64,000 nucleotides of DNA from positions 1 through 64,000 of IMG/VR virus record IMGVR_UViG_3300008261_000001; one strand, given 5' to 3'. Within the stretch, counting starts at the first letter, position 1; every line of letters begins with the position of its first letter. Below are positions 10 to 63,535 of this stretch, piece after piece. Under the pieces are notes generated by a model. The model did not search any database and had not been told where the DNA came from. It was given only the letters and a program-made list of their open reading frames with translations. A program made the translations under genes and the position numbers.

Positions 10-372
10 CTAAGCCTCCGCTTCTTTTTTGTTCCACGAAGCTCTTATAAAATCCAGAACAGAGTTTCCAATATCCATGTGATGGGCATAGACGCTTTTA
101 TTGATGGGGCAGAGTGGAGCACTCTGCTCGGTGGTGTTGTTCCAATCGTCCTCCCAACCAAATCTGTATCCCTCCAACGACATTTTGAGTAAAAACTTCT
201 TGGGGAACAGATTGTGTGCGAAGGAGATCGTTGTTTGGGAAGGGTCTTGTATATTCCCATGTTCGCGGAAACCACATTCAGCCAACACTCCTAAGAGGAG
301 GTCTCTAGTGGTGATCTCAATTTGACGCGGGAGCATAACACGCCTACCACCCTCTATCTTGGTTAAAGTCAT
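10..372 (-). CDS. Small hypothetical protein, paralog family A
   Basis: LTKIEGGRRV N-terminus, LAECGF core and FIRASW end match 54434..54736 and five other small ORFs. Confidence 0.7.
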   Translation of the reverse strand: MTLTKIEGGRRVMLPRQIEITTRDLLLGVLAECGFREHGNIQDPSQTTISFAHNLFPKKFLLKMSLEGYRFGWEDDWNNTTEQSAPLCPINKSVYAHHMDIGNSVLDFIRASWNKKEAEA

Positions 373-444
373 TTAAGCCTCTGTCTTGCTCGTGTTGCTT
401 AACGCTTTATAGAATATCCTATTTGGAACGCTAGGGAGATCAAC

Positions 445-741
445 ATGAGAGTACTTGAGATACTGAGCTTGTTAGAAATCTGCACGGGGCATGGGCAGTT
501 CGATGTGCCTTGTAACTGGCAGGCTTATCTTCAGTCTATAGGTGAGGTCGTGTGGGTTTCAGCTAGAGAGGTGGAACTATCCGAAAAGGGGTCTGTAGCT
601 GAGTGCTTAAAGCCTTGCGTACTTCACTCTAGGATAGCCCCTTACGCTTTGTTGGATAAGGGTAGTCGCTTAGAGGTAGTCGGCAGACTGAGTGATAGGT
701 ATATAGAGGTTAAGCCCATAGACCTAAAGCTGAGAGACTGA
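445..741 (+). CDS. Hypothetical protein, 98 aa
   Basis: ORF with GGAG upstream; fills the gap; no motif recognised. Confidence 0.5.
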   Translation: MRVLEILSLLEICTGHGQFDVPCNWQAYLQSIGEVVWVSAREVELSEKGSVAECLKPCVLHSRIAPYALLDKGSRLEVVGRLSDRYIEVKPIDLKLRD

Positions 742-785
742 GAGACTGAGGGTATGATTGGATAAGCACAAATGAAAGGTTCGTT

Positions 786-944
786 ATGGAAAAGAAATCT
801 AGGAGAGAGCGTAAGAGGGATAAGCTAGTGCAGAGGTTCAAAGAACTAAAGGATAAGGAGCGTTTGTTGTTGGAGTACCTAGATTATGTAGAAAAGAGCG
901 AGCTATCCTCTCCACCAATCGTCAAAAGCACCGAACTCGATTAG
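786..944 (+). CDS. Possible small charged protein (52 aa, MEKKSRRERKRD...)
   Basis: Read manually, below the ORF-track cutoff; fills the 741-903 gap and overlaps the 3' end of the convergent gene. Confidence 0.35.
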   Translation: MEKKSRRERKRDKLVQRFKELKDKERLLLEYLDYVEKSELSSPPIVKSTELD

Positions 945-1262
945 TTCGTAGATATCGTCTGGGATGTAAGGTACACAATCGTAGGAGAACCACTCTCCGT
1001 GTAGTCTGAAATCCTTGAGTAGTTCGTGTAGATCTCTCTCCCTCCAAGCCCATCCCTTAAAGTAGGCGATAAGGCGGAGTTCTTCTCCATTACCTGTTTG
1101 AAGTTCTCTTATGCGTTTGTGTGGGTTTTTAGCCCGACCTATTTTTATCAGTCCCGTCTTATTTGATTGGATAAAATAAAGGAAATCTGATCCTTTTATT
1201 TCGGTTTGCTTTTGAAGCGTCCAAGCTCTTAACTCTTTTGAGTTTGTGATGGGTTTATCCAT
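903..1262 (-). CDS. T5orf172 / GIY-YIG-like domain protein
   Basis: YFIQ...LIKIG...RIRELQTGN...ERDLH...GEWF signature. Confidence 0.9.
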   Translation of the reverse strand: MDKPITNSKELRAWTLQKQTEIKGSDFLYFIQSNKTGLIKIGRAKNPHKRIRELQTGNGEELRLIAYFKGWAWRERDLHELLKDFRLHGEWFSYDCVPYIPDDIYELIEFGAFDDWWRG

Positions 1263-1278
1263 GTTCGTTTAATGAACC

Positions 1279-5779: not shown

Positions 5780-5784
5780 TGCCG

Positions 5785-21575: not shown

Positions 21576-21941
21576 ATGAGAACAGCAAGCGAAGTTGTAA
21601 GAAGCCTTGAGCAGAGGATTGCTCGCCTTGAAAGACAATCCAGTATCTTGGGTAAGACCTGTGTGATTGAGAAAATGTATAGGGGAGGCAGAGAAGGTGA
21701 GAGGGGTGAAGCCGTTCTTAATTGTAATGGAGTTAAGCTGTCCATAAAGTTCGACCTTTATGGTTATTCGACGGTGATTGGAAATGACCAACACTTGGAA
21801 AGTACAGGGGCGTTGGGACTCTTAGACAATCTTAAGATGGAGTATGGTGTGCCTAAAATCAAAGAGTTCATCGCTAAATGTATTGCGATAGCAGGTAGAG
21901 AAGGTATGACTCTTGACGAGTGTATCAAAATCGCCCGATAA
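21576..21941 (+). CDS. Hypothetical protein with RTASEV..LE.RIARLE leader
   Basis: N-terminal about 20 aa shared with the next gene; remainder unrelated. Confidence 0.8.
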   Translation: MRTASEVVRSLEQRIARLERQSSILGKTCVIEKMYRGGREGERGEAVLNCNGVKLSIKFDLYGYSTVIGNDQHLESTGALGLLDNLKMEYGVPKIKEFIAKCIAIAGREGMTLDECIKIAR

Positions 21942-22021: not shown

Positions 22022-22627
22022 ATGAGAAGAACAGCAAGCGAAGTTTTACAGGAGCTTGAGACAAGAGTTGCCCGCCTTGAGAGGAAGGCTTGGAACCCCT
22101 TCAAGAAAAAAGAGGCACCCGTTGCCCCCGTGGAAGAGAAAGGGGCGTGGTCTACAAGCTATCCAGCTTTGGATTTGGGCTACAAAGGTCACACAAAAGA
22201 GGTGGTTCAGATGGGTCTTAATAACCTTGTCTATTCGGGCGATGAGGAAACCGTTGGGGATGTGGTTAAAATACACCTGCGTGATATGCACGGAACCACC
22301 TATGTGGAGGGAGCCTCAGCAGGGGACTACTATCGAAGGAATCTTAATGTGGATATAAAGAAAGTATCCGTAAGGTCTGTTTGGCTAGAAGAAAAGTCTA
22401 GCCGAAAGATAGATCTAGCTGTAGTGTTAGATGTGGTTTACGGTGATGTTTCACACCGAATGATGGATGGCGACACCTGGACGGATAGTCATGGGGGTAA
22501 GGGTACATTAGTGTCCTCCATAGGTGGTGTGATCTATATGTTCGAGGGACACGAATCGGATGACATTGCGATCAAGTATCTGCAAAAAAAGGAAGGCAAT
22601 AAGTACTTCAAGCTCTGGGGTAAGTGA
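22022..22627 (+). CDS. Hypothetical protein with RTASEV..LE.RVARLE leader
   Basis: As for 21576..21941. Confidence 0.8.
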   Translation: MRRTASEVLQELETRVARLERKAWNPFKKKEAPVAPVEEKGAWSTSYPALDLGYKGHTKEVVQMGLNNLVYSGDEETVGDVVKIHLRDMHGTTYVEGASAGDYYRRNLNVDIKKVSVRSVWLEEKSSRKIDLAVVLDVVYGDVSHRMMDGDTWTDSHGGKGTLVSSIGGVIYMFEGHESDDIAIKYLQKKEGNKYFKLWGK

Positions 22628-23645: not shown

Positions 23646-23966
23646 TTATGTGGGGTGGTTGTTTTCGTACCAAAGCCTACGAGCTTCGGTTAGAACATCT
23701 TCCATCGAGTCGAGCAAATACTCGACATCGTAAGTGATGTGTACATTACCATAATCAAGTCGAAAAGAAGTTTCCTTGAAATGGATAGACCCTTGCTCAC
23801 CGAGGAGCAAGAAGGAGAGTTGGTTTATCTGAGGGTTGTAATCAACCTCCATTTCGGTTAAAAACTCCTCCCAGTATGTTTGGATTTCATCCGAGTTCTG
23901 GGCGTAGACCAAAAGGTCAACATCGACATGGGTCTCCGCCCCTATCTTATGAGTGAACACCCTCAA
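23646..23966 (-). CDS. Small hypothetical protein, possibly a distant family A member
   Basis: GAAGGAGG RBS; ends EARRLW. Confidence 0.65.
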   Translation of the reverse strand: MRVFTHKIGAETHVDVDLLVYAQNSDEIQTYWEEFLTEMEVDYNPQINQLSFLLLGEQGSIHFKETSFRLDYGNVHITYDVEYLLDSMEDVLTEARRLWYENNHPT

Positions 23967-39814: not shown

Positions 39815-40189
39815 ATGGATGAGCGTTCGAATAGGATAAGCACTTTGTTTGGTGACTTGGGTGTTCTTTCTACAGCGTTAGAGAAGACATTCCCTTACAG
39901 GTGCAGGGTGTGTGATGGTCGTGGGGGGGAGGTGACTTGGGTAGATTGTGAGCCTGTGGTGAAGGCGTGTACGAGTTGTTATTACAACGAGCTTGATCCT
40001 CTGAACATAAATCTCAGGATGATCTTTAAGGGTTATTTGCCGACTTATGGGTGGTGGTCTTGGATAAGTCCTACAGCAGGGTTCGACTTACTGGACGCGG
40101 AGGGTACAGATAGGGTGGATTTACTGACAGACGAGATAGACCGTCTGAGGGCGGAGTTTAATGGGCTTATCGTGATATTGGATAACTAA
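39815..40189 (+). CDS. Zn-finger protein (CxxCxGxGG...CxxC), paralog family B
   Basis: CRVCDGRGG, CTSC, LDPLNINL, ISPTAGFDLLD. Confidence 0.8.
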   Translation: MDERSNRISTLFGDLGVLSTALEKTFPYRCRVCDGRGGEVTWVDCEPVVKACTSCYYNELDPLNINLRMIFKGYLPTYGWWSWISPTAGFDLLDAEGTDRVDLLTDEIDRLRAEFNGLIVILDN

Positions 40190-45005: not shown

Positions 45006-45434
45006 TTACCGCCTACGAGCTTCGAGACGAGCGATGCGGGTTTCGAGACTTCTGAGTACATCAGAGGCTGATCTTCTGCTACCCATACCGTGGGTGTTAT
45101 AGAGGCTACGCTCGTGTTCCGCATCGGATGCCCCTTCTGCCCAATCTTGATAAGAGCTAATGCTCTCGTTTAGCTCTGAGATGGCACTTGCGGATAAGGG
45201 GCTCATAGCGAGTATGTCTAATGCCTCACTGAAGTCCCCTGAGGTGAGGGCTTCGTTGAGGGACTCTAAACCACGCTGTCCAAAGACAGACCTTCTTTGT
45301 GTGGGGGACATCTCAAGCCAAATACCATGTAGTGTTGAGAAACACGCTTTCGCCTCTGCCGTGGGGCGACCACTCACCGCCGCATGGTTTAACGCTGAAC
45401 AACCAAGATAGTCTCTAGATGATAATCTTCTCAT
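45006..45434 (-). CDS. Hypothetical protein with C-terminal RSASDVLRSLETRIARLE motif
   Basis: GGAG before ATG 45434 (MRRLSS); motif shared with the N-termini of 21576 and 22022. Confidence 0.75.
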   Translation of the reverse strand: MRRLSSRDYLGCSALNHAAVSGRPTAEAKACFSTLHGIWLEMSPTQRRSVFGQRGLESLNEALTSGDFSEALDILAMSPLSASAISELNESISSYQDWAEGASDAEHERSLYNTHGMGSRRSASDVLRSLETRIARLEARRR

Positions 45435-45498
45435 GATTTCTCCATGTGTGTGTGTACTGAGCAAGAAAGAACAACACATGGGAAACCCTATAAACAAA

Positions 45499-47674: not shown

Positions 47675-47762
47675 AGGTCTTATCCTTTTCGTTTAATGGT
47701 TCGGTTAATCTCAGCGTCTGTATCTATCTAATATAGGATAACCTTTAGCGGTTATTTTCCAA

Positions 47763-47975
47763 TCAGCGGTTATTATTCCAATCAGCTATTCGCTTTCTCA
47801 CCTTCTCCACCTCCTCGATACCCTCCTCCTTGAGCGAGGCGAAGCGTGTTGAGCGTGAGCCGAAGCTAAAATCGGATACCTCGTCCTCCTCGCGGTCGGG
47901 GATAAACCCCAGCTCGTCCGCTAGGTGGTAAAGGTTCTTTCCGAACATCCCAAGTTCCGTGATGTGTACTGCCAT
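47763..47975 (-). CDS. Small hypothetical protein
   Basis: AAGGAG RBS. Confidence 0.65.
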   Translation of the reverse strand: MAVHITELGMFGKNLYHLADELGFIPDREEDEVSDFSFGSRSTRFASLKEEGIEEVEKVRKRIADWNNNR

Positions 47976-48000
47976 TGTCTCTCTCCTTCGTGAGTTAAGT

Positions 48001-48066
48001 GAGCTTAGGGGCTAAGTGAGCTTAGGGGCTAAGTGAGCTTAGGGGGCTAAGTGAGATTAGGGGCTA
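48001..48066. repeat. 17-bp tandem repeat GAGCTTAGGGGCTAAGT x~4
   Basis: Units at 48001, 48018, 48035 and 48053. Confidence 0.95.
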
Positions 48067-48078
48067 CCCCCCACTCTC

Positions 48079-48480
48079 TCACCCCTCCCACTCGGGATCC
48101 TCTGAGGGGTCGTACATATTGTGGCTCTCATAGGAGTGCCACATATCGTTCACAGCCTTCGTGACAGCTTCGTCCGACTCCATCATGACATCCACGAGGA
48201 GGTCACGAGGGCGGTTGGGGTCGAGGAGGTTCACACCCACCTCACGGCTCACACCGTTGGGACCGAGGGGGAGGTTCGTGTTGAGGGGGTCAAGACCCTT
48301 CTCTGTGCAAGCGAAGCACACATCGGTGCCAGTAGGGGCGGTCTTGCCGAGGTTCAAAAGCTCATGCCCCTTGCCACCGCAGTTGGTGCAGGCGTGGGGG
48401 TAGTGCCTCTCCATGAGGTCAGCGATGAGGTCGGGGTTGTTGCGGTCGAGGTTCTTGAGGTCGAGGTTCTTGAAGCTCAT
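48079..48480 (-). CDS. Zn-finger protein, paralog family B
   Basis: CTNCGGKG...CFAC...LDPLNTNL...LLDPNRP; AGGAG before ATG 48480. Confidence 0.8.
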   Translation of the reverse strand: MSFKNLDLKNLDRNNPDLIADLMERHYPHACTNCGGKGHELLNLGKTAPTGTDVCFACTEKGLDPLNTNLPLGPNGVSREVGVNLLDPNRPRDLLVDVMMESDEAVTKAVNDMWHSYESHNMYDPSEDPEWEG

Positions 48481-48535
48481 TGGATAACTCCTTAGTCTGT
48501 TGTGGTCTGTTGTGGTTCGTTCTGTCGCTACCCCT

Positions 48536-48564
48536 CTAATAAGGGGCTTTTGAGCTTGGGATAA
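48536..48564 (-). promoter_or_regulatory. Promoter-like cassette
   Basis: TTATCC-N17-TATTAG. Confidence 0.75.
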
Positions 48565-48605
48565 AAATCGGGGAAGTTTTTTGAGGGGTCTCTCACCCCT
48601 CACTA

Positions 48606-48809
48606 TCAGTTAAGGCTCTTGAAGCAGAAGGTGGCCATGTCGGTTGTGGGGTATGTAATGACATACCACCCCTGTGCGTTGAGAGCCTCCTTAGCCTTCT
48701 TGACCAAAGCGGGGGTCATGTTCTTCACAATCGCCTCTCTCTCGCTGACGAACTTCGCCTCGTTGGTGGGGAGGGCCTGCTTGAGGATCTTGATGATTCC
48801 GTAATCCAT
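48606..48809 (-). CDS. Small hypothetical protein
   Basis: AAGGAG RBS; degenerate cassette upstream (CATTAG at 48854). Confidence 0.7.
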   Translation of the reverse strand: MDYGIIKILKQALPTNEAKFVSEREAIVKNMTPALVKKAKEALNAQGWYVITYPTTDMATFCFKSLN

Positions 48810-48887
48810 GTGTAACTCCTTAGTAGGTTGTTCTGTCTCACGCTGTCCCCCTACTAATGAGGGGTGTTCTCTCTCGTCTAGGGGTTT

Positions 48888-49121
48888 TTACATCCCAGTG
48901 ATGAGCCACTCTCTGTCTTCCACAGAGAGGAAGGGGAGAGCCTTTTGGATAAGCTCCCCTGCACACCACACCTCAAGCCCCTTATGGAGCTTGTCCGCAT
49001 CCACACCCATCAGAGTTCGGGTCTCCCCATTAGGGGTAAAGGGACAACTACGAGTGATGGTGGTGCCGTTGAGGTTGAGGGTGATGGTGCCGAGAGGTCT
49101 CTTGTTCTTGAGCGTAAGCAT
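48888..49121 (-). CDS. Small hypothetical protein
   Basis: AAGGA RBS; LSVEDREWLITG end. Confidence 0.7.
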   Translation of the reverse strand: MLTLKNKRPLGTITLNLNGTTITRSCPFTPNGETRTLMGVDADKLHKGLEVWCAGELIQKALPFLSVEDREWLITGM

Positions 49122-49177
49122 CTTATTGTCCTTGTCTTGTGGTGGGGCTAGAGAGGGGGGCTAGAGTGAGGGCTAGT

Positions 49178-49471
49178 CTAGCCTATCTTCGTCCACTCGA
49201 TGGTCTTGGGTGTCTCGATAGACTCAAGACCGTCATACTCCTTGATGCGGTAGCGGTTCCCCGCTACCGAGGCAACGGACAACCTTGCGAAAGGACCCCA
49301 CGAAGCCCGCCCCATTTCCTCCACGACCGCTACAAGGTCAGCGTCATGGCGGGAGATGGAGAAGGGGTCGATGTCGTCCATGTTAACTCCCTTACGGGTG
49401 GCGAGGGCGGTGAGGGCGAGGTCGCTGAGATCGAAGCCGCCGTAGCAGATGTTGATGACAACCTTTTTCAT
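49178..49471 (-). CDS. Conserved-looking small phage protein (KVVINxCYGGF type)
   Basis: KKVVINICYGGFDLS...RHDADLV...IKEYDGLESI; AAGGAG RBS. Confidence 0.75.
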   Translation of the reverse strand: MKKVVINICYGGFDLSDLALTALATRKGVNMDDIDPFSISRHDADLVAVVEEMGRASWGPFARLSVASVAGNRYRIKEYDGLESIETPKTIEWTKIG

Positions 49472-49522
49472 AACGAAGCTCCTTGTTGGAGGCGGGGGGG
49501 GGATTCTCGTTCGGTTGCCCCA

Positions 49523-49551
49523 CTAATAAAGGGTCTTAGAGCTTGGGATAA
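49523..49551 (-). promoter_or_regulatory. Promoter-like cassette
   Basis: TTATCC-N17-TATTAG; divergent pair with 49626. Confidence 0.75.
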
Positions 49552-49625
49552 AAAATTAGGAAACTTTTTCTCCTCACCACTGACCCCTCCATAATGGAGG
49601 GGGGTATGAAAAACTTTCCATTTTC

Positions 49626-49654
49626 TTATCCCAAGTGTGGGGGACGATTATTAG
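49626..49654 (+). promoter_or_regulatory. Promoter-like cassette
   Basis: TTATCC-N17-TATTAG. Confidence 0.75.
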
Positions 49655-49708
49655 TGGGTGACAGCGATAGACAGAACAACCTAGAGCCTACAGAAAGGGC
49701 TTAGAGAC

Positions 49709-50026
49709 ATGATCATCTACAGCAACAGCAACCCGCTCTTTGAGCAGGTGAAGGACGCCCTCGACACCGTCCTCCTTCACGACTTGGACGAGGGGGTGTA
49801 CTTTAACTCCTTCTCTACATCAGTCGAGAAGGATAACCGAGAGGTCTACCTCACCCTCTCCTACGAGCCCAACATCGAGCAGATCCACCTTATCCTCAAG
49901 ACCATCAACAGCTTCGAGGGTGTGGGGGCAGATTTTATGCCCGCCACCTATAAGCTCACTTTGGTGCGAGGATTTGTATCCCCCACTTGGCTCACCTCAC
50001 CCACGATTCGGCTTTACATGAAGTAA
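49709..50026 (+). CDS. Small hypothetical protein, probable paralog of 39298..39648
   Basis: Shared LKT...GV.A...P..YK segment. Confidence 0.7.
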   Translation: MIIYSNSNPLFEQVKDALDTVLLHDLDEGVYFNSFSTSVEKDNREVYLTLSYEPNIEQIHLILKTINSFEGVGADFMPATYKLTLVRGFVSPTWLTSPTIRLYMK

Positions 50027-50088
50027 GCACCCCCTAAGCACCCCCTAGCACTAAGCTCCCACCTAGCCCCTAAGCTCCATATCCGCCT

Positions 50089-50589
50089 CTAGCGTGAGTC
50101 GCCACTACCCTTGATGACACCGCGTGAGGATCTATCCAATAGCTTCTCGATGTTCTTCTCAGCCACTTCGGATAAGCTCACATCTAGCTCGTCCGCTATA
50201 CGAGCTATGTACCAGAGAACATCACCCACCTCGGATAAGAAATCTTTCTTCCACTCCGTAGAAAGGTCAAAGGCGGACTGATCACGGATAACCTTCTTGA
50301 TCTTACCTGCGACTTCACCTGCTTCGGAAGCAAGACCCAAAGCTAAATAAGTGATGGCTTGGTCTTTTGGATAGATAGCTGTAAGCCTCGTGGACTCTTG
50401 ATACTCGTTAAGGCGGGCGTTGTAACACACAACTGCCCCCTTATCCTCTAGGTACTTATCAATAATCTTGTCGTTTTCCTCTTGAGAGCGTCCAGGTAAC
50501 CCAAATAGACGGTTCATGTCCCCACGGGTGACTATAATAGGAAGCTCTATGCCCCCTACACGCTCTATGTACTCGTATCTCTTCTGCAT
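50089..50589 (-). CDS. mazG: MazG-like nucleotide pyrophosphohydrolase
   Basis: LGLASEAGEVAGKIKK...EVGDVLWY...NIEKL; AGGAG before ATG 50589. Confidence 0.93.
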   Translation of the reverse strand: MQKRYEYIERVGGIELPIIVTRGDMNRLFGLPGRSQEENDKIIDKYLEDKGAVVCYNARLNEYQESTRLTAIYPKDQAITYLALGLASEAGEVAGKIKKVIRDQSAFDLSTEWKKDFLSEVGDVLWYIARIADELDVSLSEVAEKNIEKLLDRSSRGVIKGSGDSR

Positions 50590-50643
50590 AGACAAACTCC
50601 TTCTGTAAGTCTGTGTCTGTGTTCCTTGTAAAGAAGCATACCT

Positions 50644-50952
50644 TCAATAACTGAGCATACCCATTATCCCATTGATTACACCTCCTATAACAAACGCTAA
50701 CTTCAGCTTATCCAATGTCTTCACCTCCCCAACAAGCTCTTTAAAAATGGGGTTCTCCTTCACCAACTCCGCCACAACATCGTTCACTTCCTCTTGGGTC
50801 ACTAGAACCTCTTCGGTTAGTGCCTTATCCGCAAATAAGGCGTTGGACTGCACAAGTAGGTGTACCACCTGCGATGTCTTACGAATACACAACACATGGG
50901 TCACAACAGCACCCATGCTGAACAATAAAAACAAACCGATGCTCGGTGTCAT
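50644..50952 (-). CDS. Small membrane protein
   Basis: Hydrophobic N- and C-terminal segments. Confidence 0.65.
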   Translation of the reverse strand: MTPSIGLFLLFSMGAVVTHVLCIRKTSQVVHLLVQSNALFADKALTEEVLVTQEEVNDVVAELVKENPIFKELVGEVKTLDKLKLAFVIGGVINGIMGMLSY

Positions 50953-50968
50953 ATCCTATTTTTCCTTT

Positions 50969-51038
50969 GGGTTAGGGCTAGTGGGGGTTAGGGCTAGTGG
51001 GGGTTAGAGCTAGTGGGGGTTAGGGCTAGTGGGGCTAG
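50969..51038. repeat. 16-bp tandem repeat GGGTTAGGGCTAGTGG x4
   Basis: Units at 50969, 50985, 51001 and 51017. Confidence 0.95.
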
Positions 51039-51261
51039 TCGTCAACACAACACGATGGCTTTTTGTTAAATGAGATAAAAACTTTGAGGTTAGTTCTCCC
51101 CATACAAGGTAGTTCACGAAGGCACCCGCTGTGTCGTTGAAATCAACCTTACAGCCCACCACTACTGCGAGCTTCATTAGAGAAGCCTCGGTTTCTTTGT
51201 CTTGTGGGAAGATGACCTCTACAGCCTCTTTGCTTTTTATAAGAACCATCATAGACACCAT
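51010..51261 (-). CDS. Small hypothetical protein, paralog of 54816..55082
   Basis: EAVEVI...GCKVDF...YLVW...KFL...SH matches DALEVV...GCKLEY...YLVY...KFI...SH. Confidence 0.7.
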   Translation of the reverse strand: MVSMMVLIKSKEAVEVIFPQDKETEASLMKLAVVVGCKVDFNDTAGAFVNYLVWGELTSKFLSHLTKSHRVVLTTSPTSPNPH

Positions 51262-51287
51262 GTGTTATTCCCCCATAAGGACTTTGA

Positions 51288-51599
51288 ATGAAGAACACCA
51301 TCTTGCTAGATGGAAAACGAGTGTGGAACTTCGACCCCCAATGGGTCGAAACTCTATCTGTCGAAGTGCTTTATTACTTGGTCTCTGAGACCCTCGGTGA
51401 ACTAGGCTTTGAACGGCTAAATAAATGTGTGTACTACAAGGACGGCATAACTATCTTCTGTGACTCAGAGAAGAAGACCTATGAGGTCGATATAACCATC
51501 AACGGCAAGATGATCACCTCTCACAGCTTCATGCACTTATGGGAGTCTATCCGTACACATTGGATAGTCACCCATCGACTTAGAGAACCCTCCGCTTAG
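51288..51599 (+). CDS. Small protein, paralog family A
   Basis: DGKRVW, LGELGF, LWESIRTHW. Confidence 0.75.
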   Translation: MKNTILLDGKRVWNFDPQWVETLSVEVLYYLVSETLGELGFERLNKCVYYKDGITIFCDSEKKTYEVDITINGKMITSHSFMHLWESIRTHWIVTHRLREPSA

Positions 51600-51958
51600 A
51601 TAGAACCCTCCTCAGCCTCTTCGTAGAGGCTATCGAGCAACTCCACCGCCTCATTAATCTGATCTATAAGGAGCGTCTTTGGGCGGTCTGGGTCGAGGAG
51701 GTCAAAACCCGCTGTGGGGCTGATGTACCCCTCTCCGTCAGGGGTCATCTTGAGATTGATGTTCAAGGGGTCATAGCCCTTGTCATAGCAGTCCGCACAG
51801 GTGTGGATGTCCACACAAGCTGGCTCGTAATGCGTCTGAGAGAGGTGGCGGATCTCACCGCCACGACCGTTACAAGTAAGGCATCTGTGGATGTAAGCGT
51901 CTGCGTGAGCGAGCTTGAGGTTCTTGATGGTGTTCTTGGTGGTCTCGATGGGGGTCAT
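51596..51958 (-). CDS. Zn-finger protein, paralog family B
   Basis: CLTCNGRGG, CADC, YDPLNINL, ISPTAGFDLLD. Confidence 0.8.
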   Translation of the reverse strand: MTPIETTKNTIKNLKLAHADAYIHRCLTCNGRGGEIRHLSQTHYEPACVDIHTCADCYDKGYDPLNINLKMTPDGEGYISPTAGFDLLDPDRPKTLLIDQINEAVELLDSLYEEAEEGSI

Positions 51959-51997
51959 GTGCGTCTCCTAGTGTGTCTCTATCTTGGTTGCCCCTCC

Positions 51998-52026
51998 CTA
52001 ATAGCCGAGCTTCGGACTTGGGATAA
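51998..52026 (-). promoter_or_regulatory. Promoter-like cassette
   Basis: TTATCC-N17-TATTAG; extended identity to the 38277 and 39234 copies. Confidence 0.75.
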
Positions 52027-52071
52027 CAAAATGGAAAGTTTTTTTGGAGTTAGAGAAATCTAGACACCACC

Positions 52072-52181
52072 ACCTAGATTTCTACCTAGATTTCTACCCC
52101 CCACCCACCTCCCACCTCTGCCCTCTCCCTTAACCTCTGCCCTCTCCCTTAACCTCTGCCCCCTCCCCCCCACCTCTGCCC
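52072..52181. repeat. C-rich intergenic repeats (ACCTAGATTTCT x2; ACCTCTGCCCTCTCCCTTA x2+)
   Basis: Direct repeats read from sequence. Confidence 0.85.
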
Positions 52182-52418
52182 TTAGTAGGGGAGGGACTGC
52201 CACCCCTTACCCACCTTCACCACATTTCCCACGAGGCCACGGAAGTGGGGGTTAGCGGGGAGTCCGAGGGGCAAGCCGTCCTCGTTGGCGAGGGTGGTGA
52301 TGCCTTTGACCTTCTCCACAATCTGCACATCGCCACCCACGGCTCTCTGAAGGTCGGTGAAGCTGTTAACCTCGATGTCGAGGATGTCTCCGTTGGTCTT
52401 GAACACTTGTGCCTTCAT
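52182..52418 (-). CDS. DUF3846-like small phage protein
   Basis: DLQRAVGGDVQIV...NEDGL..GLPAN...LVGNVV. Confidence 0.7.
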   Translation of the reverse strand: MKAQVFKTNGDILDIEVNSFTDLQRAVGGDVQIVEKVKGITTLANEDGLPLGLPANPHFRGLVGNVVKVGKGWQSLPY

Positions 52419-52467
52419 GGGCAATCTCCGTATGTGTTGGTTGGGTGTCTCTCTCGCTGTCCCCCTA

Positions 52468-52496
52468 CTAATAAGGGGGATTGGGACTTGGGATAA
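52468..52496 (-). promoter_or_regulatory. Promoter-like cassette
   Basis: TTATCC-N17-TATTAG. Confidence 0.75.
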
Positions 52497-52555
52497 TCTT
52501 TTGAGAATATTTTTTTGGGGGGGTGTAGAAATCTTGCCCTAGAAATCTAGCCCAA

Positions 52556-52876
52556 CTAGCTAGACCGCGTACCTTGCTTGCGTCTGGGGATGCCCAATAG
52601 CTTCATGTGTTTCCACACCGTACACACACTGCAACCTAGTGAGTCAGCTATATATTGGATAGTTCTACCTTCCTCTACATACAGCTTATTGAGAACCACT
52701 ATCCAATCCACATCATAGGTTCTATCCTTTACGCCTATGCCGAGCTTCTTTTTGGCGTAGCTGATAGAAGAGAACCCATACTTCGCCTCGACCTCTACAT
52801 TGGTCATACCACTATTCAGATCAGCTATGAACTCGTCTAGCTGAGAGGGTTCTAAGAACCTCGGTTTATAGCTCAT
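52556..52876 (-). CDS. Small two-HTH DNA-binding protein
   Basis: MTNVEVEAKYG; LYVEEGRTIQYIADSLGCSVCTVWKHM. Confidence 0.75.
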   Translation of the reverse strand: MSYKPRFLEPSQLDEFIADLNSGMTNVEVEAKYGFSSISYAKKKLGIGVKDRTYDVDWIVVLNKLYVEEGRTIQYIADSLGCSVCTVWKHMKLLGIPRRKQGTRSS

Positions 52877-52907
52877 GTTTAGCACCCATTTCTTAAATAC
52901 GGAAAGT

Positions 52908-52936
52908 TTATCCCAACCCTCAGAACCCCTTATTAG
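52908..52936 (+). promoter_or_regulatory. Promoter-like cassette
   Basis: TTATCC-N17-TATTAG. Confidence 0.75.
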
Positions 52937-52972
52937 TAGGGGGCAGAGCCCCACCTAAGCAAGGAGAACCCT

Positions 52973-53284
52973 ATGAACAGCTTCAACAGCAACAGCTTTG
53001 TTACCATCAGCACCATCCTCACCAATAACAACACGCAGGACGACACCCTCTTGATGGTGAAGGAGTGGGCGGAGCTTATGCTCCTCCTCACGGGAGAGTG
53101 TCCTAACTATACGCCCACCCTCACCCATCTCCCCACCGCCTATGTGGAGGTGGGGAAGTTGCTCGATGAGCAACAAGCCCATCAGCTTGCCTTGTGGAAG
53201 GAGGAGGAGGCTTCTAATAAGGAAGCCTTGTGGCTTGAGGAGGTGGAGAACCGCCTAGAAGCTGGCGAGCGTGTGAGCTTCTAA
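52973..53284 (+). CDS. Small hypothetical protein
   Basis: AAGGAG RBS after cassette. Confidence 0.7.
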   Translation: MNSFNSNSFVTISTILTNNNTQDDTLLMVKEWAELMLLLTGECPNYTPTLTHLPTAYVEVGKLLDEQQAHQLALWKEEEASNKEALWLEEVENRLEAGERVSF

Positions 53285-53319
53285 CCCAACCCCATTCACA
53301 ACACAAGAAAGGTAGACAC

Positions 53320-53634
53320 ATGGCGATATACAGCTTCTTGACCGAAGAAGGAAAGAGGGAGTGGACAGCCCACGCCACCTCATGCTTTTGGTTCGACAAC
53401 ACGGAGGACGGAAAGAGGGCGAATCTAGAGCTTGCCTTCAACGCTCTGATAGAGGCTGGGTTCAACGCCCAAAATGGTCTATTGGTTAAGGGGGGTATGT
53501 CCATCAAGCTGTCCGACTATGGGCTACAAATAAATACGGCTGGTGGTACGGCAGGTAGAAAGCTGAACATTTCCACCATGTGGAAGGACATAAGGGATGC
53601 TTGGGACTTATTGATGCCTCCCCCTAAGGGTTAG
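53320..53634 (+). CDS. Small protein, paralog family A
   Basis: EGKREW, LIEAGF, MWKDIRDAW. Confidence 0.75.
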   Translation: MAIYSFLTEEGKREWTAHATSCFWFDNTEDGKRANLELAFNALIEAGFNAQNGLLVKGGMSIKLSDYGLQINTAGGTAGRKLNISTMWKDIRDAWDLLMPPPKG

Positions 53635-53695
53635 GGGGGTTAAGGGCTAGAGGGTAAGGGGCTAGTGGGTAAGGGGCTAGAGGGTAAGGCTAGAG
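53628..53695. repeat. About 15-bp G-rich tandem repeat GGGTAAGGGGCTAG(A/T) x~4
   Basis: Between convergent stop codons. Confidence 0.9.
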
Positions 53696-54366
53696 ATGAA
53701 GGCGTTCATCTGAGAGACTGCATCTTCGGATAACAGATACTCCCTAGCATAGACGCTATCGCTCTGATCTTGTCGATTGGATAAATCATCTCCGACTTCG
53801 CTTTTAAGGTTGGAGGTCTTTTGCCAAACAAACCGAGAGTCCACCGAGGTCTCAAAGCCTATCCAAGAGAACATCTCTAGTAGGTGAGAAGAGACTTGTT
53901 GAGCATGAGCGTTATGCCCAGAGACGATTACACCGCACTTCTTTCCGTCTAAGGGGTTTTGTTCTCCATAGACGGATTTCCTATTCTCTAGGGTGTTGAG
54001 TCGCTCGATGATTTTTTGCAGTAGTGCCGAGTGGGATCCCCAACGAACGCTTGTGGAGAACAACACCGCGTCCGCCCAAGCGATGCCGTCATAAATAACG
54101 GGCATTTCATCTACTCCCCCATAAGCCTTTGGGTTTTCAGCGGAGAGCTTATGAGCCCAACAGCGATATTGACCTGCATCGAACGAAGCACAGTTGAACT
54201 TTCCGTCCGCATAACAGCTTAGGTTATCCACAATGTGGAGGTCGTTTGCGTTGATGTATCTTATCTCATGCCCTAGAGCTTTAAGCTCTTGTAAGGCGTA
54301 GGACAAGAAAGCACGGCTAGTAGATTTCTTAGCGTGTGTGGTCGTACTGATAGCTAGGATGTTCAT
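53677..54366 (-). CDS. Flavodoxin-fold NAD(P)H-dependent FMN reductase / iron-sulfur flavoprotein-like
   Basis: ILAISTT, Cys cluster CY...C...CW, DEMPVIY...ADAVLFSTSVRWGSHSALLQKIIERL, GKKCGVIVSG. Confidence 0.88.
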   Translation of the reverse strand: MNILAISTTTHAKKSTSRAFLSYALQELKALGHEIRYINANDLHIVDNLSCYADGKFNCASFDAGQYRCWAHKLSAENPKAYGGVDEMPVIYDGIAWADAVLFSTSVRWGSHSALLQKIIERLNTLENRKSVYGEQNPLDGKKCGVIVSGHNAHAQQVSSHLLEMFSWIGFETSVDSRFVWQKTSNLKSEVGDDLSNRQDQSDSVYAREYLLSEDAVSQMNAFISSLTL

Positions 54367-54433
54367 GTGAAGCTCTCTAGGTGGGGGGGTTCTCTATACT
54401 TAGGCTATACTAGCACGAAATGGAAATCCCTAT

Positions 54434-54736
54434 ATGAGATTAACCAAGATAGACAACGGCAAGAGGGTGTGGGACTTGGATAATCCTGAGGTCAACCCTA
54501 GCTCGTGGACGGAAGATAAAAGGAAAGTTCTGTTAGCCACCGCCTTGACCATAGAGCTTGGGTTTCAGTTCCACCCACCCACCAACACCTTCAGCAAGGG
54601 TAGCCTACACCTAGTTGTAGATCTGAAAGACGACACCTTCTCATGTTTGGTAGTCGTTCGTGGTGTATGGTGTCACACAGACGACTTTGAGAGCATATGG
54701 GATGTCATCCGAGAACATTGGGTGCAGTACGCTTAG
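54434..54736 (+). CDS. Small protein, paralog family A
   Basis: NGKRVW, IELGF, IWDVIREHW. Confidence 0.75.
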   Translation: MRLTKIDNGKRVWDLDNPEVNPSSWTEDKRKVLLATALTIELGFQFHPPTNTFSKGSLHLVVDLKDDTFSCLVVVRGVWCHTDDFESIWDVIREHWVQYA

Positions 54737-54739
54737 TTT

Positions 54740-54768
54740 TTATCCCAAGTCCGAAATCAGCTTATTAG
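54740..54768 (+). promoter_or_regulatory. Promoter-like cassette
   Basis: TTATCC-N17-TATTAG. Confidence 0.75.
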
Positions 54769-54815
54769 GGGGGTGTTAGAGAGAGAGACACAACCCCACA
54801 GCTAAGGAGCTAACG

Positions 54816-55082
54816 ATGTTTCAAGCCCTACCCGACACAGCTATGATTTACCTCAATGGCGACGCTCTGGAGGTGGTTATCCTCCACAGCAAGACCTCCC
54901 ACGCAGTCCTCAAGGCGGCGGCTGATCACTCTGGGTGTAAGCTGGAGTACACGGGACTCCATAATGGAGAGGGGGGGAGCTTCGACCCCTACCTTGTGTA
55001 CCACCCCACGGAGGGGCGGAAGGGTGTGGAGAAGTTCATCAAGGAGCTTCCCCCTAGCCATGTGGTGATTGTTTACCGCTAA
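54816..55082 (+). CDS. Small hypothetical protein, paralog of 51010..51261
   Basis: AAGGAG RBS; shared motifs. Confidence 0.75.
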   Translation: MFQALPDTAMIYLNGDALEVVILHSKTSHAVLKAAADHSGCKLEYTGLHNGEGGSFDPYLVYHPTEGRKGVEKFIKELPPSHVVIVYR

Positions 55083-55269
55083 CCCTCCTCATAGGTGGAG
55101 GGGACTAGGTACTCGTTATTATCATTTATCCAATTTAGAGTACCGAGGAAGGATTGGATAAGTCCTACTGATTAATGCTATGAGATTTCTCTACTGAGAG
55201 AGTCCAGAACTGAGAGAGTCCTCTAGTCCAACATAAATAGGGTGTTGTAGGTTGACCCTATAATCCTAT

Positions 55270-56553
55270 CTAGGAGGGGATCTTCACACCTAGACGATAG
55301 TATCTATTCTGAAGTGATAGGGGGCGTATGCCGAACCTCTTGGCTAGGGGGATTAAGTCTTTCTTTCTGGTGTTCTCGTCTACTAGGGACAGAAACTCTT
55401 CCCTAGTCATGTTTTGATACTCTTGTGTACCTCTGTTGGTGAGAGACTTCCACATCTTCTTACGGAGGAGTTTAATGTAGAGGGACATGGGCTTTATCCC
55501 CATACCCTCGGCTACATTTTTAAGAGACTCCATAGAGTCTATGTCCTTGATAACCTCGTTTAGCTTCTCATTGTCGTGTTTAATCTTCTCTTTCTTCCAC
55601 CCCTTATTTCGAGCTATAGTCCTCAAAATCCCTTCGCTCACCAACCACTCCTCTGAAAGCTCTTCGAAGGTCTTACCCCCCAATAATGCCTCGATGATCT
55701 TATCCCCATAAATATCCTCGGCCTGCTCCAACAGCTTAGGCTTAACCTTACGCTTGAGATTGGAGATCTTACCCCCTAAACCTTGCTTAACGAGGGACAG
55801 TCGCACTCCCTCCCGTGTTAAACCCACTTGGTCTCCAATCTCTTGCAAGGTCTGACCCTCTGCCCTCAGCATTGCAATCTGCTTGTCCACTGGACTTATG
55901 TTCACTCGGGACTTCAAGGTCAAATCGTTTGCCTTTAATACCCTCTGCAACCTTTGATAGTTATACCCCATTAAATCCGCTAACTCCCCCCTCCTCATCC
56001 CTTGCTCTATACCACCCTTGATCTTATCCAATTCTTCTCCACTAAGGATATAACCCTTTGCCTTGACGGTTAAACCCTTATTATCCATATAACGCCTCAC
56101 CGACCAAGCCGACCTCCCCACAACCTTAGACAACTCATGATACCCAAGCCCATCAGCTATGCCCTTATCCAATAACTTCCTCTCGGACACGGAAAACTTG
56201 TCCACATCCATAGAGAACTTATCCAACAAGCTCTTTATCCTCGGATAAGAGCAACCCATATGCACCATCAGCTCCGTAGTGTCCTTACCCTCGTCTATAC
56301 CCGCTTGAAGACGAGTCCTCACCGCATTCTCCCCACCCATAGCCGCAATCCACCTCGTTAAAGAAGCATGAGATAACGACTTCATTAAAGAAGGATTCAA
56401 CTTAAGATCCAACTCCCTCAGCCATATGTAAAAAGTCGAGACCGACACCCCCAACTCCGTAGCACACTCCGCAACAGATAAACCACGAGCGATAACCTGA
56501 GCTATCTTTGCCTTGTTCGGCACTATACGCTTCCTGCCCATATGCTCTCTCAC
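55270..56553 (-). CDS. Multi-HTH DNA-binding protein (about 7-8 HTH-like units) with a sigma-70 region-4-like HTH
   Basis: SVAECATELGVSVST, GYHELSKVVGRS, RRGELADLMG, TLQEIGDQVGLTREGVR, TFEELSEEW, SLKNVAEGMG; paralog of 40943..41776. Confidence 0.8.
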   Translation of the reverse strand: MREHMGRKRIVPNKAKIAQVIARGLSVAECATELGVSVSTFYIWLRELDLKLNPSLMKSLSHASLTRWIAAMGGENAVRTRLQAGIDEGKDTTELMVHMGCSYPRIKSLLDKFSMDVDKFSVSERKLLDKGIADGLGYHELSKVVGRSAWSVRRYMDNKGLTVKAKGYILSGEELDKIKGGIEQGMRRGELADLMGYNYQRLQRVLKANDLTLKSRVNISPVDKQIAMLRAEGQTLQEIGDQVGLTREGVRLSLVKQGLGGKISNLKRKVKPKLLEQAEDIYGDKIIEALLGGKTFEELSEEWLVSEGILRTIARNKGWKKEKIKHDNEKLNEVIKDIDSMESLKNVAEGMGIKPMSLYIKLLRKKMWKSLTNRGTQEYQNMTREEFLSLVDENTRKKDLIPLAKRFGIRPLSLQNRYYRLGVKIPS

Positions 56554-56629
56554 TCTCTCCCCCCAACATTAGGGGGGTTCTAGGTGTCCTTTTTTACTTA
56601 TACAAAACCTCTCGGTCTTGTCAAAAAAC

Positions 56630-57433
56630 TTAGTGATCGTTAGCTTCGATTCCGGTCTTGGACTTAAGGAGCTTCTCAAGGTGTGAAACCACCTTGAGGG
56701 CTACCTCCTCGCCATCTGCCGCTGAAACTCCGTTGGGCAGATCTGTGCCGTCTAGTCCAAGACCGATGCCCACGAGCTTGATGCCCTCAGCTTGAGCTTG
56801 TAGGCGTAGGCTCTCTAAATATCTCTTGGTGTTACACTGACCATCGGTCAGGAAGAAGGCTATCTTATGCGTTGCATCTATCTGTCGAGCGAGGTCGAGG
56901 GCGGCCTCGGCATAACAGATCAAGTCCGTCCCACCTGTCGGATGACTATCCTTCATTTTCTTGAAGTGGTCGGGAGACCACTTCTCATGTGGCCACTTCG
57001 CCACGGCTACGATGGGAGAGTTAGCCGAGCTTGCACCTGTGGGTGCGTTGAAGTGGTACTCGTAAAAGCACCCAGCCACTGCCGTTTTAACACCTATCCT
57101 CTGACACCCATCTGCGAGGGCATCTATGAGGAGACAACACTCGTTCCACCACTTGGTGGTTTTACCTGTAGCTGTCTGTTGGGTGTAGTTCATGGAGTCT
57201 GACATATCGACCACGAAGCTAAACCCAGCGGACACCTCGGGAGAGGAAAAGATCCGCTCATAGCGGTCTTTGTTAACATAACCCGCGTTCACCGCCACCA
57301 CGCTCCGCGTGAGAGCGGAGCGGTTCAGACGGACACCGATGGGGCGGAGCCCTACGGCTTGGTTTGCCACCTCTAGCTGACGACGAATCTTGTTCAAACC
57401 ACCTTGTATGGACGACTTAATCTTCTGAGTCAT
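56630..57433 (-). CDS. von Willebrand factor A (MIDAS) domain protein
   Basis: FVVDMSDSM, PTGGT, FFLTDG; GAGGAG before ATG 57433. Confidence 0.9.
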   Translation of the reverse strand: MTQKIKSSIQGGLNKIRRQLEVANQAVGLRPIGVRLNRSALTRSVVAVNAGYVNKDRYERIFSSPEVSAGFSFVVDMSDSMNYTQQTATGKTTKWWNECCLLIDALADGCQRIGVKTAVAGCFYEYHFNAPTGASSANSPIVAVAKWPHEKWSPDHFKKMKDSHPTGGTDLICYAEAALDLARQIDATHKIAFFLTDGQCNTKRYLESLRLQAQAEGIKLVGIGLGLDGTDLPNGVSAADGEEVALKVVSHLEKLLKSKTGIEANDH

Positions 57434-61694: not shown

Positions 61695-62007
61695 ACAGGA
61701 CTCGCCCTATAAGGGAAGATACATAGGGTCTATCAGTGGGGGTGTATAAGGGGACACATAGGGGTAAGGGATAAGGGGACACACACCCTACGAGAACTAC
61801 ATCCCCCCCCTACCCACCTAGAAATCTAAACCCACCAAGTTCAAAACTATCCAATATCCGAGAAATATCCAATATTGAAGTTCTGTAGACACCAGAAACC
61901 TGTAGAATCGCGTCAATAAGTGGACTTAGGCACCCCCCTAGCCCAATTTGGCATATTAACTACGCACTGAAAATGCAAACCCAAATTTGAAACCATAGTT
62001 AAACCGC

Positions 62008-62110
62008 CCTTACCCTTACCCTCCATATAGATCTACCTTATCCCTTATCCTCCATATAGACCCATATCCCTTATCCGCATATAGACCCTTACCCTTATCC
62101 CATATAGACC
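62008..62110. repeat. Four degenerate 23-28-bp repeats CC(C)TTA(T/C)CC...CATATAGA (origin-like island 2)
   Basis: Read directly; inside a 650-bp non-coding gap at a C-to-G strand switch. Confidence 0.85.
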
Positions 62111-62310
62111 GTCTTACATATGAGGATTCATCTTGCTCCTTATATACGGCTGATTGGGGTGAGTGGTTTAGTTCGAAAAGGGGTTAGGATTCTGTTAAAT
62201 TTTTCAAAATGGAAACTTGGAAAAGTGGTCCTAAAAATAGTTTTGGGTAAATTTTTTTGGGTTGATTTTGAAACCCCCTATTCTGCTTGAGTGTTTATAT
62301 GTGGGCGTAG

Positions 62311-62348
62311 GGTGTATTGGGCATAAGGTGTATTGGGCATAAGGTGTA
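62311..62348. repeat. 16-bp repeat GGTGTATTGGGCATAA x2.4
   Basis: Exact copies at 62311 and 62327. Confidence 0.9.
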
Positions 62349-62352
62349 GTAT

Positions 62353-62784
62353 ATGAGAGCAAAGACGACAAAGAACAGTGGGGGGGAGAGGGTGTGGGAG
62401 GGTTGGGTATTGGATAAGTCTATATTGCTGTCGGGGGTGTTTGATTATGATTTAGCGTTGGGTTTGTATGAGGACATAGTGTGTGGTTTGGAGGAGTCTA
62501 ATTTAAAGTTGAGGGGTAGTGGAGGTGGGGACAAGTACAAGATAAGGGAGTTTGTGGTGGGTAGTAGGGTTGTGAGGCAGGAGAGTTTGGAGTTATCGAT
62601 GAGGATTTACTTAGTGCGGTCGAGTTTATTTGGTGGTGCTATATGTTATGACATAATGGTGGTGGGAGAGTTTGAGGATGAGGGTATGTTATCGGTATCG
62701 GGTAAGAGGTTAGATTTGCCGATGGTGGAGGACTCTATATGGGTGGACATAAGGGTATGTTGGAGGAGTTTGGGAGGTGAGTAG
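62353..62784 (+). CDS. Small protein, paralog family A
   Basis: GGERVW, IWVDIRVCW. Confidence 0.7.
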   Translation: MRAKTTKNSGGERVWEGWVLDKSILLSGVFDYDLALGLYEDIVCGLEESNLKLRGSGGGDKYKIREFVVGSRVVRQESLELSMRIYLVRSSLFGGAICYDIMVVGEFEDEGMLSVSGKRLDLPMVEDSIWVDIRVCWRSLGGE

Positions 62785-63139
62785 TTGGGAGGTGACTAAG
62801 ATGAACGAGGTAGGGGAGAGGGTATGGAGGGAGGAGTGGGTGTGGGTTTTTGTAAGTTCTCATTTTACGGTAGAGAAGAGGGAGTATGTATTACACCGAG
62901 GGTTGAGGGAGGCTGGGTTTGAGTTATTTTCGCCTGTGGGGGGATTTATTTACGAGTTGGGTGTGTTAGTGGGTGGGGAGCCGAGGTATATAAGGGTGTG
63001 TGGTCTTGAGTCGGATGGTGGACTTGAGATAGGGATATACAATAAGTGGGATTTATTAGTTCGTGGTGAGTTAAGTGGGGGGGAGTGGGGGCTTTTATGG
63101 GAGCGTATAAGGGGGTTATGGGTGAGTAGTTTTGTATAA
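62777..63139 (+). CDS. Small protein, paralog family A
   Basis: VGERVW, LREAGF, LWERIRGLW. Confidence 0.75.
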   Translation: MSSWEVTKMNEVGERVWREEWVWVFVSSHFTVEKREYVLHRGLREAGFELFSPVGGFIYELGVLVGGEPRYIRVCGLESDGGLEIGIYNKWDLLVRGELSGGEWGLLWERIRGLWVSSFV

Positions 63140-63163
63140 GGGGCTTGGTAAGGAGGTTAGAGC

Positions 63164-63535
63164 ATGAGAAATGTTACGGAGAGAGACTTAGAGACTGGGA
63201 AGCGTAGGTGGAAAAGTGAAGTTTGTTATTTATTGGATGAGGGTGCGTTTATTTTAGTGTTGGATGTGTTGCACGAGGGTTTATTGGAGTCAGGTTTTAA
63301 GAAGTTAAATGTGGGTGGTTTTGAGTATGAGTTAGTGACAGCGGATGGGGAGTATTGGATAAGGTTGAGTTTGAAAGAGAATTCTTTGTTGGAGGTGAGT
63401 TTGTATAACAAGTGGGACATATTGGGTCGGGTGGAGTTGGAGAGAAAAGATTGGATAAGTTTATGGGAGCGTATAAGGGATTTGTGGGAGTGGGTATTGA
63501 GGTTTGCGGCGAATAAGTATCCGAACAATAAATGA
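63164..63535 (+). CDS. Small protein, paralog family A
   Basis: TGKRRW, LLESGF, LWERIRDLW; shares YNKWD.L.R.EL with the previous gene. Confidence 0.75.
   Translation: MRNVTERDLETGKRRWKSEVCYLLDEGAFILVLDVLHEGLLESGFKKLNVGGFEYELVTADGEYWIRLSLKENSLLEVSLYNKWDILGRVELERKDWISLWERIRDLWEWVLRFAANKYPNNK

Follow-up and report, generated by a model that had tools for sequence, protein, structure and literature searches.

Seven small open reading frames (ORFs) scattered over one 64,000-nucleotide stretch of phage DNA are true homologues and make up a single family, which we call family A. The stretch, hereafter the window, comprises bases 1-64000 of one 290,179-bp contig, the IMG/VR virus record IMGVR_UViG_3300008261_000001, whose genome is labelled G000. 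Family A is a lineage-restricted multigene family of small (100-190 amino acids), soluble, mostly mildly acidic proteins, with an isoelectric point of 4.7-6.9 in 22 of 24 members. Our leading interpretation, which we hold tentatively, is that these proteins are binding modules, each directed at a partner of its own, whose most probable use is in host takeover or counter-defence. All seven ORFs lie exactly where an initial annotation of the window had placed them, 10..372 on the minus strand and the other six on the plus strand; the last three listed, spanning 62353..63535, are referred to as the trio.

10..372, minus strand: 120 amino acids, V-type subfamily; motifs G-R-R-V-M, L-A-E-C-G-F and F-I-R-A-S-W
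51288..51599, plus strand: 103 amino acids, W-type; leave-one-out hidden Markov model (HMM) E 1.8e-9; BLASTP to 54434 E 4e-6
53320..53634, plus strand: 104 amino acids, W-type; leave-one-out HMM E 1.3e-4
54434..54736, plus strand: 100 amino acids, W-type, the sequence modelled with AlphaFold2; leave-one-out HMM E 9e-10
62353..62784, plus strand: 143-amino-acid type whose central motif is degenerate (E-E-S-N-L) and whose sheet region is enlarged; gene 1 of the trio
62777..63139, plus strand: 120 amino acids, W-type, gene 2 of the trio; leave-one-out HMM E 1.1e-7; BLASTP to 63164 E 2e-17
63164..63535, plus strand: 123 amino acids, W-type, gene 3 of the trio; leave-one-out HMM E 4e-10

The similarity might have been chance or a compositional artefact, with no family behind it. 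BLAST between most pairs of members is insignificant, the exceptions being 62777/63164 (42% identity) and 51288/54434, and the composition of the trio is strongly skewed. Despite these mostly insignificant scores, family members rank top for each other in the BLASTP hit lists, and among the 350 window ORFs leave-one-out HMMs found 51288, 53320, 54434, 62777 and 63164 at E 1.3e-4 to 4e-10. Built on window sequences alone, these models did not recover 10..372, 62353..62784 or 23646..23966. The first two of these were linked to the family by profile-profile comparison in hhalign, where a 12-sequence core profile (A6) matched the subfamily containing 10..372 (A7) with Prob 95% and E 3.8e-8, and the 143-amino-acid subfamily containing 62353 (A8) with Prob 94.5% and E 8.2e-8; the A7 and A8 profiles include orthologues and paralogues from related phages and from the rest of the genome. 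In addition, 10..372 was matched at E 3e-6 by a profile of the two further members 289407 and 289796 and at E 6.4e-4 by a 10-sequence core profile, and the positional orthologue of 62353 in a related phage (L011:188-622) matches the core profile at E 4.7e-5. Alignment and HMMs thus give significant homology for all seven.

The three motifs that the initial annotation had described, N-terminal, central and C-terminal, are real, being conserved in an alignment of 21 sequences. We define family A by an N-terminal G-x-R hairpin, a central L-x-E-x-G-F, a C-terminal [WL]-x-x-[IL]-R-x-x-[WY] and profile-level homology, and all seven window ORFs fall within this definition; 62777..63139, which begins with GTG, retains the conserved T-K ahead of its G-x-R motif. 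In the alignment four residues, G12, R14, E42 and R105, never vary and L40 and W108 hardly do, and all of these are retained across paralogues that are only about 20% identical. As a regular expression the three motifs match 10 of the 362 G000 ORFs of 80-200 amino acids, compared with 0.0 per shuffled proteome. When 1.84 billion representative proteins were searched with a five-sequence profile, five external clusters sharing the three motifs emerged, and the contigs of these clusters held more members, including positional orthologues of 62353. The same search also returned P0008, an 845-amino-acid repeat protein, which we rejected as a spurious match.

Chance or composition therefore has next to no probability as an explanation of the seven ORFs, and we regard it as refuted for them: the leave-one-out and profile-profile statistics are significant, the motif matches have no counterpart in shuffled proteomes, external homologues have the same motifs, orthologues are conserved with omega below 1, and the common fold is predicted with confidence. 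Only to 23646..23966 (minus strand), which had been proposed as a distant eighth member, does it still apply. That ORF lacks the three-motif pattern, gives an hhalign Prob of 0.3% and HMM E values above 0.3, and is not a member of family A.

Seven is the count for the window alone. Four secure members lie outside it, at 100672..101055 (+), 268243..268587 (-), 289407..289790 (-) and 289796..290173 (-), the last two adjacent to 10..372 across the contig ends, so that 10..372 is the first gene of a tandem array cut by those ends. In L024, one of four contigs from related freshwater phages used for comparison (the others being L010, L011 and L016), a helicase-DnaB-T5orf172 block is followed by an intact tandem array of four members, of 120, 108, 126 and 124 amino acids, the first of which is the orthologue of 10..372 (94% identical). 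The 108-amino-acid gene has no counterpart in the assembled G000 contig, and the intact array of L024 indicates that the G000 assembly breaks inside the array. Four longer ORFs (166-189 amino acids), clustered at 165167..167376, have the same three motifs and match the family profiles at Prob 82-91% and E 1e-5 to 1.3e-6; by their sequences they are probably long-form members. The genome would then carry up to 15 members, 11 of them secure, among about 323 genes, or roughly 5%. Pairwise identity between paralogues is about 20-40%. That the family is expanded, as first proposed, is borne out by these 11 to 15 paralogues within one 290-kb genome.

Relatives were seen solely in contigs of closely related freshwater phages. 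Searches with the A4 and A10 family queries found only orthologues from near-identical phages, a sequence search with 63164 found only itself, and scans of IMG/VR and GTDB representative genomes with the family motifs and alignments gave no further relatives. A tblastn search of GenBank phages with 51288 returned a chance match only. Against Pfam-A, PHROGs v4 and PADLOC-DB no match reached the gathering score, the best (E 0.004-0.1) being to unrelated families that differed between members; a Pfam scan of 16 members gave no hit, and a profile search of PDB sequences found no match. In the published literature we found nothing on family A or on cytosine-depleted phage cassettes.

The genome itself is that of a jumbo phage, as judged by its 290-kb size, its DnaB-like and SNF2-like helicases, tail-like proteins and giant ORFs, and its relatives in GenBank. 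By helicase, the closest of these are LR745208.1, an uncultured 485-kb phage (56% identity), and Tunturiibacter phage Tunturi_5 (32%), in neither of which was a family A homologue found; a megablast search of GenBank phages with window positions 50-64 kb gave no match. The contig has no terminal repeat, and its completeness is estimated by CheckV at 93%; its ORFs could be read without recourse to an alternative genetic code. DNA near-identical to it is present in metagenomes from 15 studies of freshwater, lake and drinking water.

Family A genes are under purifying selection, yet evolve several-fold faster than their neighbours. Over six orthologue pairs, omega is 0.18-0.89 for family members and 0.01-0.23 for the genes around them. 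The trio is syntenic in L010, L011 and L016, the last a short contig with a tandem pair, and compared with L010 its genes are 81% (62353, omega 0.18), 58% (62777, omega 0.32) and 33% (63164, omega 0.89) identical, whereas the flanking genes are 85-99% identical with omega 0.03-0.23. The 63164 pair may be the result of a paralogue swap. Array members compared with L024 are 94%, 74% and 77% identical (omega 0.24-0.41), and the helicases 96-99% (omega 0.01-0.06).

Copies are also gained, lost or replaced between close relatives, most visibly in one region:

47700..56630: 8.9-kb variable island of about 20 small genes, three of them family members

In L010 this island, at 47.7-56.6 kb, is replaced by 154 bp, with flanks that align at 77-81% nucleotide identity (tblastn, blastn). 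It contains 51288, 53320 and 54434, two copies each of two other small families, a MazG gene, an FMN reductase and two helix-turn-helix (HTH) proteins. Its small genes lie on alternating strands, and its three family A members are plus-strand genes amid minus-strand ones, 51288..51599 being a single plus-strand gene with minus-strand genes on either side. The family can thus rightly be called diversifying, as it was at the outset: its paralogues have drifted far apart, its orthologues change faster than the flanking genes, and three members sit in an island that L010 lacks. L010 for its part carries an insertion of 2.2 kb, encoding a DNA methylase, that is missing from G000.

Two other small families, neither with a Pfam match, touch the island. 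One has two members, 51010..51261 (-) and 54816..55082 (+) (E 6e-5), and the other three, at 39815-40189 (+), 48079-48603 (-) and 51596-51958 (-) (E 1e-16). As 51288 adjoins 51010..51261 and 54434 adjoins 54816..55082, each copy of the two-member family stands beside a family A gene, which suggests that a two-gene segment was co-duplicated. A complex prediction for 54434 with 54816..55082 scored 0.00 and returned no verdict, speaking neither for nor against binding. On its other side 51288 abuts 51596..51958, of the three-member family. The FMN-reductase gene 53677..54366 (-) (Pfam FMN_red) adjoins 53320..53634; its neighbours in IMG/VR are not syntenic, and a search with the HTH neighbour found only a 99%-identical fragment.

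Elsewhere the surroundings differ. The 10..372 array adjoins genes for T5orf172, DnaB-like and SNF2-like helicase proteins, 100672 lies between a DNA methylase and RecA, 268243 is next to a Toprim protein, and the trio adjoins a PA14 / Laminin_G_3 tail-fibre-like module, with which it is convergent. Early expression would be plausible, but members occupy at least five different contexts, several beside replication or recombination genes, so the early-type cassette in which the initial annotation placed the family does not describe all of them. A sigma-70 promoter scan gave fewer sites than in shuffled sequence and was uninformative.

These neighbourhoods raise the possibility that family A proteins assist the phage's own DNA replication, recombination or transcription, each paralogue serving as adaptor or loader to an enzyme encoded nearby (the helicases, the primase-like Toprim protein, RecA, the methylase or the HTH regulators). 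The positions of the array, of 100672, of 268243 and of the island members among MazG and HTH genes would all fit, and an ESM-Atlas shape match (template modelling score 0.64 over 78 residues) belongs to part of a 'putative DNA primase' cluster. Core replisome accessories, however, are normally conserved, and family A genes are among the fastest evolving locally. L010, a close relative, lacks three members, the nearest sequenced jumbo phages have the helicases but no homologue, and the trio lies beside tail-fibre-like genes rather than replication genes. We consider this role unlikely, though worth keeping in view.

What the proteins may do has to be approached through their predicted fold. 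A first AlphaFold model, from five sequences, reached a predicted local distance difference test (pLDDT) score of 70 and gave no fold match. With a 24-row alignment, AlphaFold2 modelled 54434..54736 at pLDDT 86 and a predicted template modelling score of 0.74. In this model strands 4-7 and 10-13 form an N-terminal beta-hairpin with G9-x-R11 at the turn; helix 1 (27-41) ends in E41 of L-x-E-x-G-F and is followed by G43-F44; a five-strand antiparallel sheet lies between 45 and 82; and helix 2 (85-99) carries W89, I92, R93 and W96 of W-x-x-I-R-x-x-W. The predicted fold is a generic sandwich of the helix-sheet-helix kind, to which a hairpin is added at the N-terminus. This hairpin and both helices hold the conserved positions, whereas insertions and most of the sequence variation fall in the stretch that joins hairpin to helix 1 and in the sheet with its loops. 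As modelled, the conserved residues appear to sit at the junction of the hairpin and the two helices, which would suit a structural core.

For this confidently predicted fold, only generic structural neighbours were found. Foldseek searches of PDB and BFVD with the 54434 model found nothing at E <= 0.001, and searches of the ESM-Atlas by shape and by feature turned up no convincing neighbour. An exhaustive structural aligner, which itself cautions that Z below 8 may reflect only a common arrangement, placed frataxin/CyaY first at Z 5.8, several further frataxins at 5.3-4.7, and type III secretion chaperones, the SARS-unique domain, Mediator Med17C and an Rhs-toxin immunity protein (Z 4.8) at Z 4.5-5.4. 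The resemblance to frataxin/CyaY (4jpd_A and 4hs5_A, both Z 5.8 and so below 8, with 72-75 residues aligned and a root-mean-square deviation of 2.7-4.2) lies in the same order of secondary structure, helix, five-strand antiparallel sheet, helix, over model residues of about 25-100. Sequence identity is 6-8%, none of the 16 members scanned matches Pfam Frataxin_Cyay, and family A has the additional hairpin with its invariant G-x-R and no sign of an iron-sulfur role. As for the acidic ridge with which frataxins bind iron and partners (helix 1 and strand 1), helix 1 of family A is not conspicuously acidic in the alignment.

The class I type III secretion chaperones (SicP, SycH, ExsC, AvrPphF ORF1) and the immunity protein TriTu are, like family A as modelled, small acidic alpha/beta sandwiches, at a similarity (Z 4.5-5) in the noise range; they act by binding other proteins, and immunity proteins too come as many diverged paralogues. 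There is no sequence relationship, and no secretion-system, effector or toxin-partner genes lie near family A members. Taken at face value, these neighbours could mean that the family supplies assembly or secretion-type chaperones, or virion-associated proteins, for the phage's many tagged or giant structural proteins, an idea to which the conserved position of the trio beside the PA14 / Laminin_G_3 module and the existence of at least 15 genome proteins with one common N-terminal helix tag would lend some colour. The Z scores, though, are in the range that the aligner itself calls noise, the trio is convergent with the structural genes and not co-transcribed with them, most members are far from such genes, and the sole complex prediction, that of 54434 with its co-duplicated neighbour, gave no answer. 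We give this idea little credence.

The conserved residues allow two further interpretations. The invariant arginines and glutamate with the aromatics might form a pocket, making the proteins small-molecule or nucleotide-signal binders (sponges) whose ligand differs by paralogue. The sponges by which phages soak up immune signals are also small and non-enzymatic, and the retention of invariant G, R, E and R and near-invariant L and W through such divergence is what a pocket might require. Searches of PDB and BFVD, however, linked family A to none of the known sponge families by sequence or fold, up to 15 copies are far above known sponge repertoires, and the modelled position of the conserved residues would suit a structural core; a sponge function seems improbable to us. 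Nucleic-acid-binding regulators, of single-stranded DNA, RNA or DNA, are slightly less probable again. The two invariant arginines and the conserved tryptophans would suit them, as would weak Foldseek rows with Sub1/PC4, Pur-alpha, dsRBD and RNase P proteins, but those rows stand at E about 1, the proteins are mostly acidic, and the family searches returned neither an HTH match nor one to any other nucleic-acid-binding family.

We return to binding modules as the interpretation we favour. In the model the conserved residues of the hairpin and helices would form a common scaffold and the variable face of the sheet the working surface, and it is this division between a conserved core and a variable sheet that leads us to it. 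The proteins would be non-enzymatic inhibitors or adaptors, each paralogue with a different protein partner, put to accessory use during infection, most probably in host takeover or counter-defence. The best structural neighbours, small protein-binding alpha/beta sandwiches, are consistent with such modules. A non-enzymatic role is supported by the lack of any catalytic-family signature in Pfam, PHROGs, PADLOC or PDB sequences, and accessory status by the fast evolution, the island missing from L010 and the extra gene in the L024 array.

Several points weigh against this interpretation. The searches linked family A by homology to no characterised effector or anti-defence protein. Ocr, Ard, Acr, Tad, Acb, Gad and other anti-defence proteins of this sort were absent from the PDB and BFVD matches, with no dedicated anti-defence profile library searched. 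The structural matches are all below Z 8, so it is by analogy that we speak of a binding module. A ligand or nucleic-acid site could equally be formed by the invariant G, R, E and R with the conserved aromatics, and the members beside DnaB, SNF2 helicases, Toprim, RecA and the DNA methylase fit a phage-internal role as well.

The most unusual feature we found concerns the trio's composition rather than its proteins. Of all genes in the genome, those of the trio have the highest coding-strand GC skew, 0.74-0.75 (mean 0.08, standard deviation 0.17), with C making up 3-10% at each codon position; over the plus-strand unit in which they lie (62250-63540) the skew is 0.74-0.78. The strong skew is conserved in the syntenic cassettes of L010 and L011 and in L016. 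Palindromic 4-mers containing G or C occur at 4.6 per kb in the trio compared with 23 per kb genome-wide, a direct consequence of the C depletion. A second C-depleted unit, on the minus strand (33000-37550), runs from about 37.55 kb into the N-terminal third of a 2898-amino-acid ORF, with a GC skew of 0.5-0.76 that fades downstream. This ORF, at window 28001-36697 (-), has no Pfam or PHROG match, and only in LR745208.1 does it have a detectable relative, 26% identical along part of its length.

Each of the two units has iteron-like direct repeats directly upstream, and both repeat types are found nowhere else in G000. For the trio they fall within one region:

61700..62352: non-coding, upstream of the trio; repeats

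Four direct repeats ending CATATAGAC lie at about 62010-62110, with inverted copies at 61707-61785, and three 16-nucleotide repeats at 62302-62349 stand directly before the ATG of 62353; repeat copy number at 62036-62086 varies between metagenome samples. The second unit is preceded, at 37572-37680 (-), by six or seven 18-nucleotide repeat units starting GGTCATATAAGC. One metatranscriptome run contained a 177-nucleotide contig at 63193-63369, inside 63164..63535, although DNA can occur in such libraries.

Two further observations concern this region. The 9-mer GGGTAAGGG occurs in 16 copies in G000 where about 2 are expected; seven are intergenic between 52 and 62 kb, at positions that include 52204, 53652-53680, 61762 and 62007-62094, with a triple repeat in the 42-bp gap after 53320..53634. 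In three DNA metagenomes contigs break repeatedly and summed depth drops at 62000-63200, with the flanks in long contigs; strain-level heterogeneity or the skewed composition may be responsible.

A bolder possibility, which we think quite unlikely, is that the trio is the payload of a new 'defence-proof' first-strike expression unit. Family A would then represent a new structural class, its proteins delivered ahead of others to act as counter-defence or takeover binders and diversified into up to 15 specificities. Its almost C-free sense strand would leave such a unit nearly without G/C-containing palindromic restriction sites and C-rich Rho-loading sites. The unit would be preceded by the iteron-like repeats and kept in related phages, with the second unit leading into the 2898-amino-acid ORF. 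Whatever its role, the C-depleted, repeat-preceded cassette is a testable genome feature in its own right.

Other parts of the genome also hold repeated elements. At 95213-99400, beyond the window, seven tandem genes of about 200 amino acids alternate between two families (52-78% identity), one of which has a D-P-P-Y motif typical of N6/N4 DNA methyltransferases; downstream lie a dCMP deaminase, the DNA methylase, family A member 100672 and RecA. The helix tag mentioned above is a near-identical stretch of about 20 residues, mostly N-terminal, with the consensus M-R-T-A-S-E-V-L-R-S-L-E-x-R-I-A-R-L-E, in otherwise unrelated proteins. In the window it is carried by 21576-21941, 22022-22627 and the C-terminus of 45006-45497, and elsewhere in G000 by at least 12 genes, among them 149811, 150466, 160291, 172006, 218975 and 228569. 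It may be a targeting, packaging or propeptide tag.

Family A is an orphan family in an uncultured phage. Lineage-specific expansion of small accessory protein families is a general phenomenon in large phages, and family A resembles other such families in its many diverged copies, its tandem arrays and dispersed singles, its variable regions, its fast evolution and its lack of annotation. The expansion itself is thus a known feature of large phages; family A differs from other expanded families in having no PHROG or Pfam match, in being confined to one narrow freshwater clade and in having one sub-cluster in a C-depleted cassette. About 5% of the genes of a widespread freshwater jumbo phage belong to this one unannotated, fast-evolving family, whose fold is confidently predicted yet unplaced. 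Such families are the usual place where new phage-host interaction functions turn up, and structure-function work could draw on family A as a natural set of paralogues that share one scaffold.

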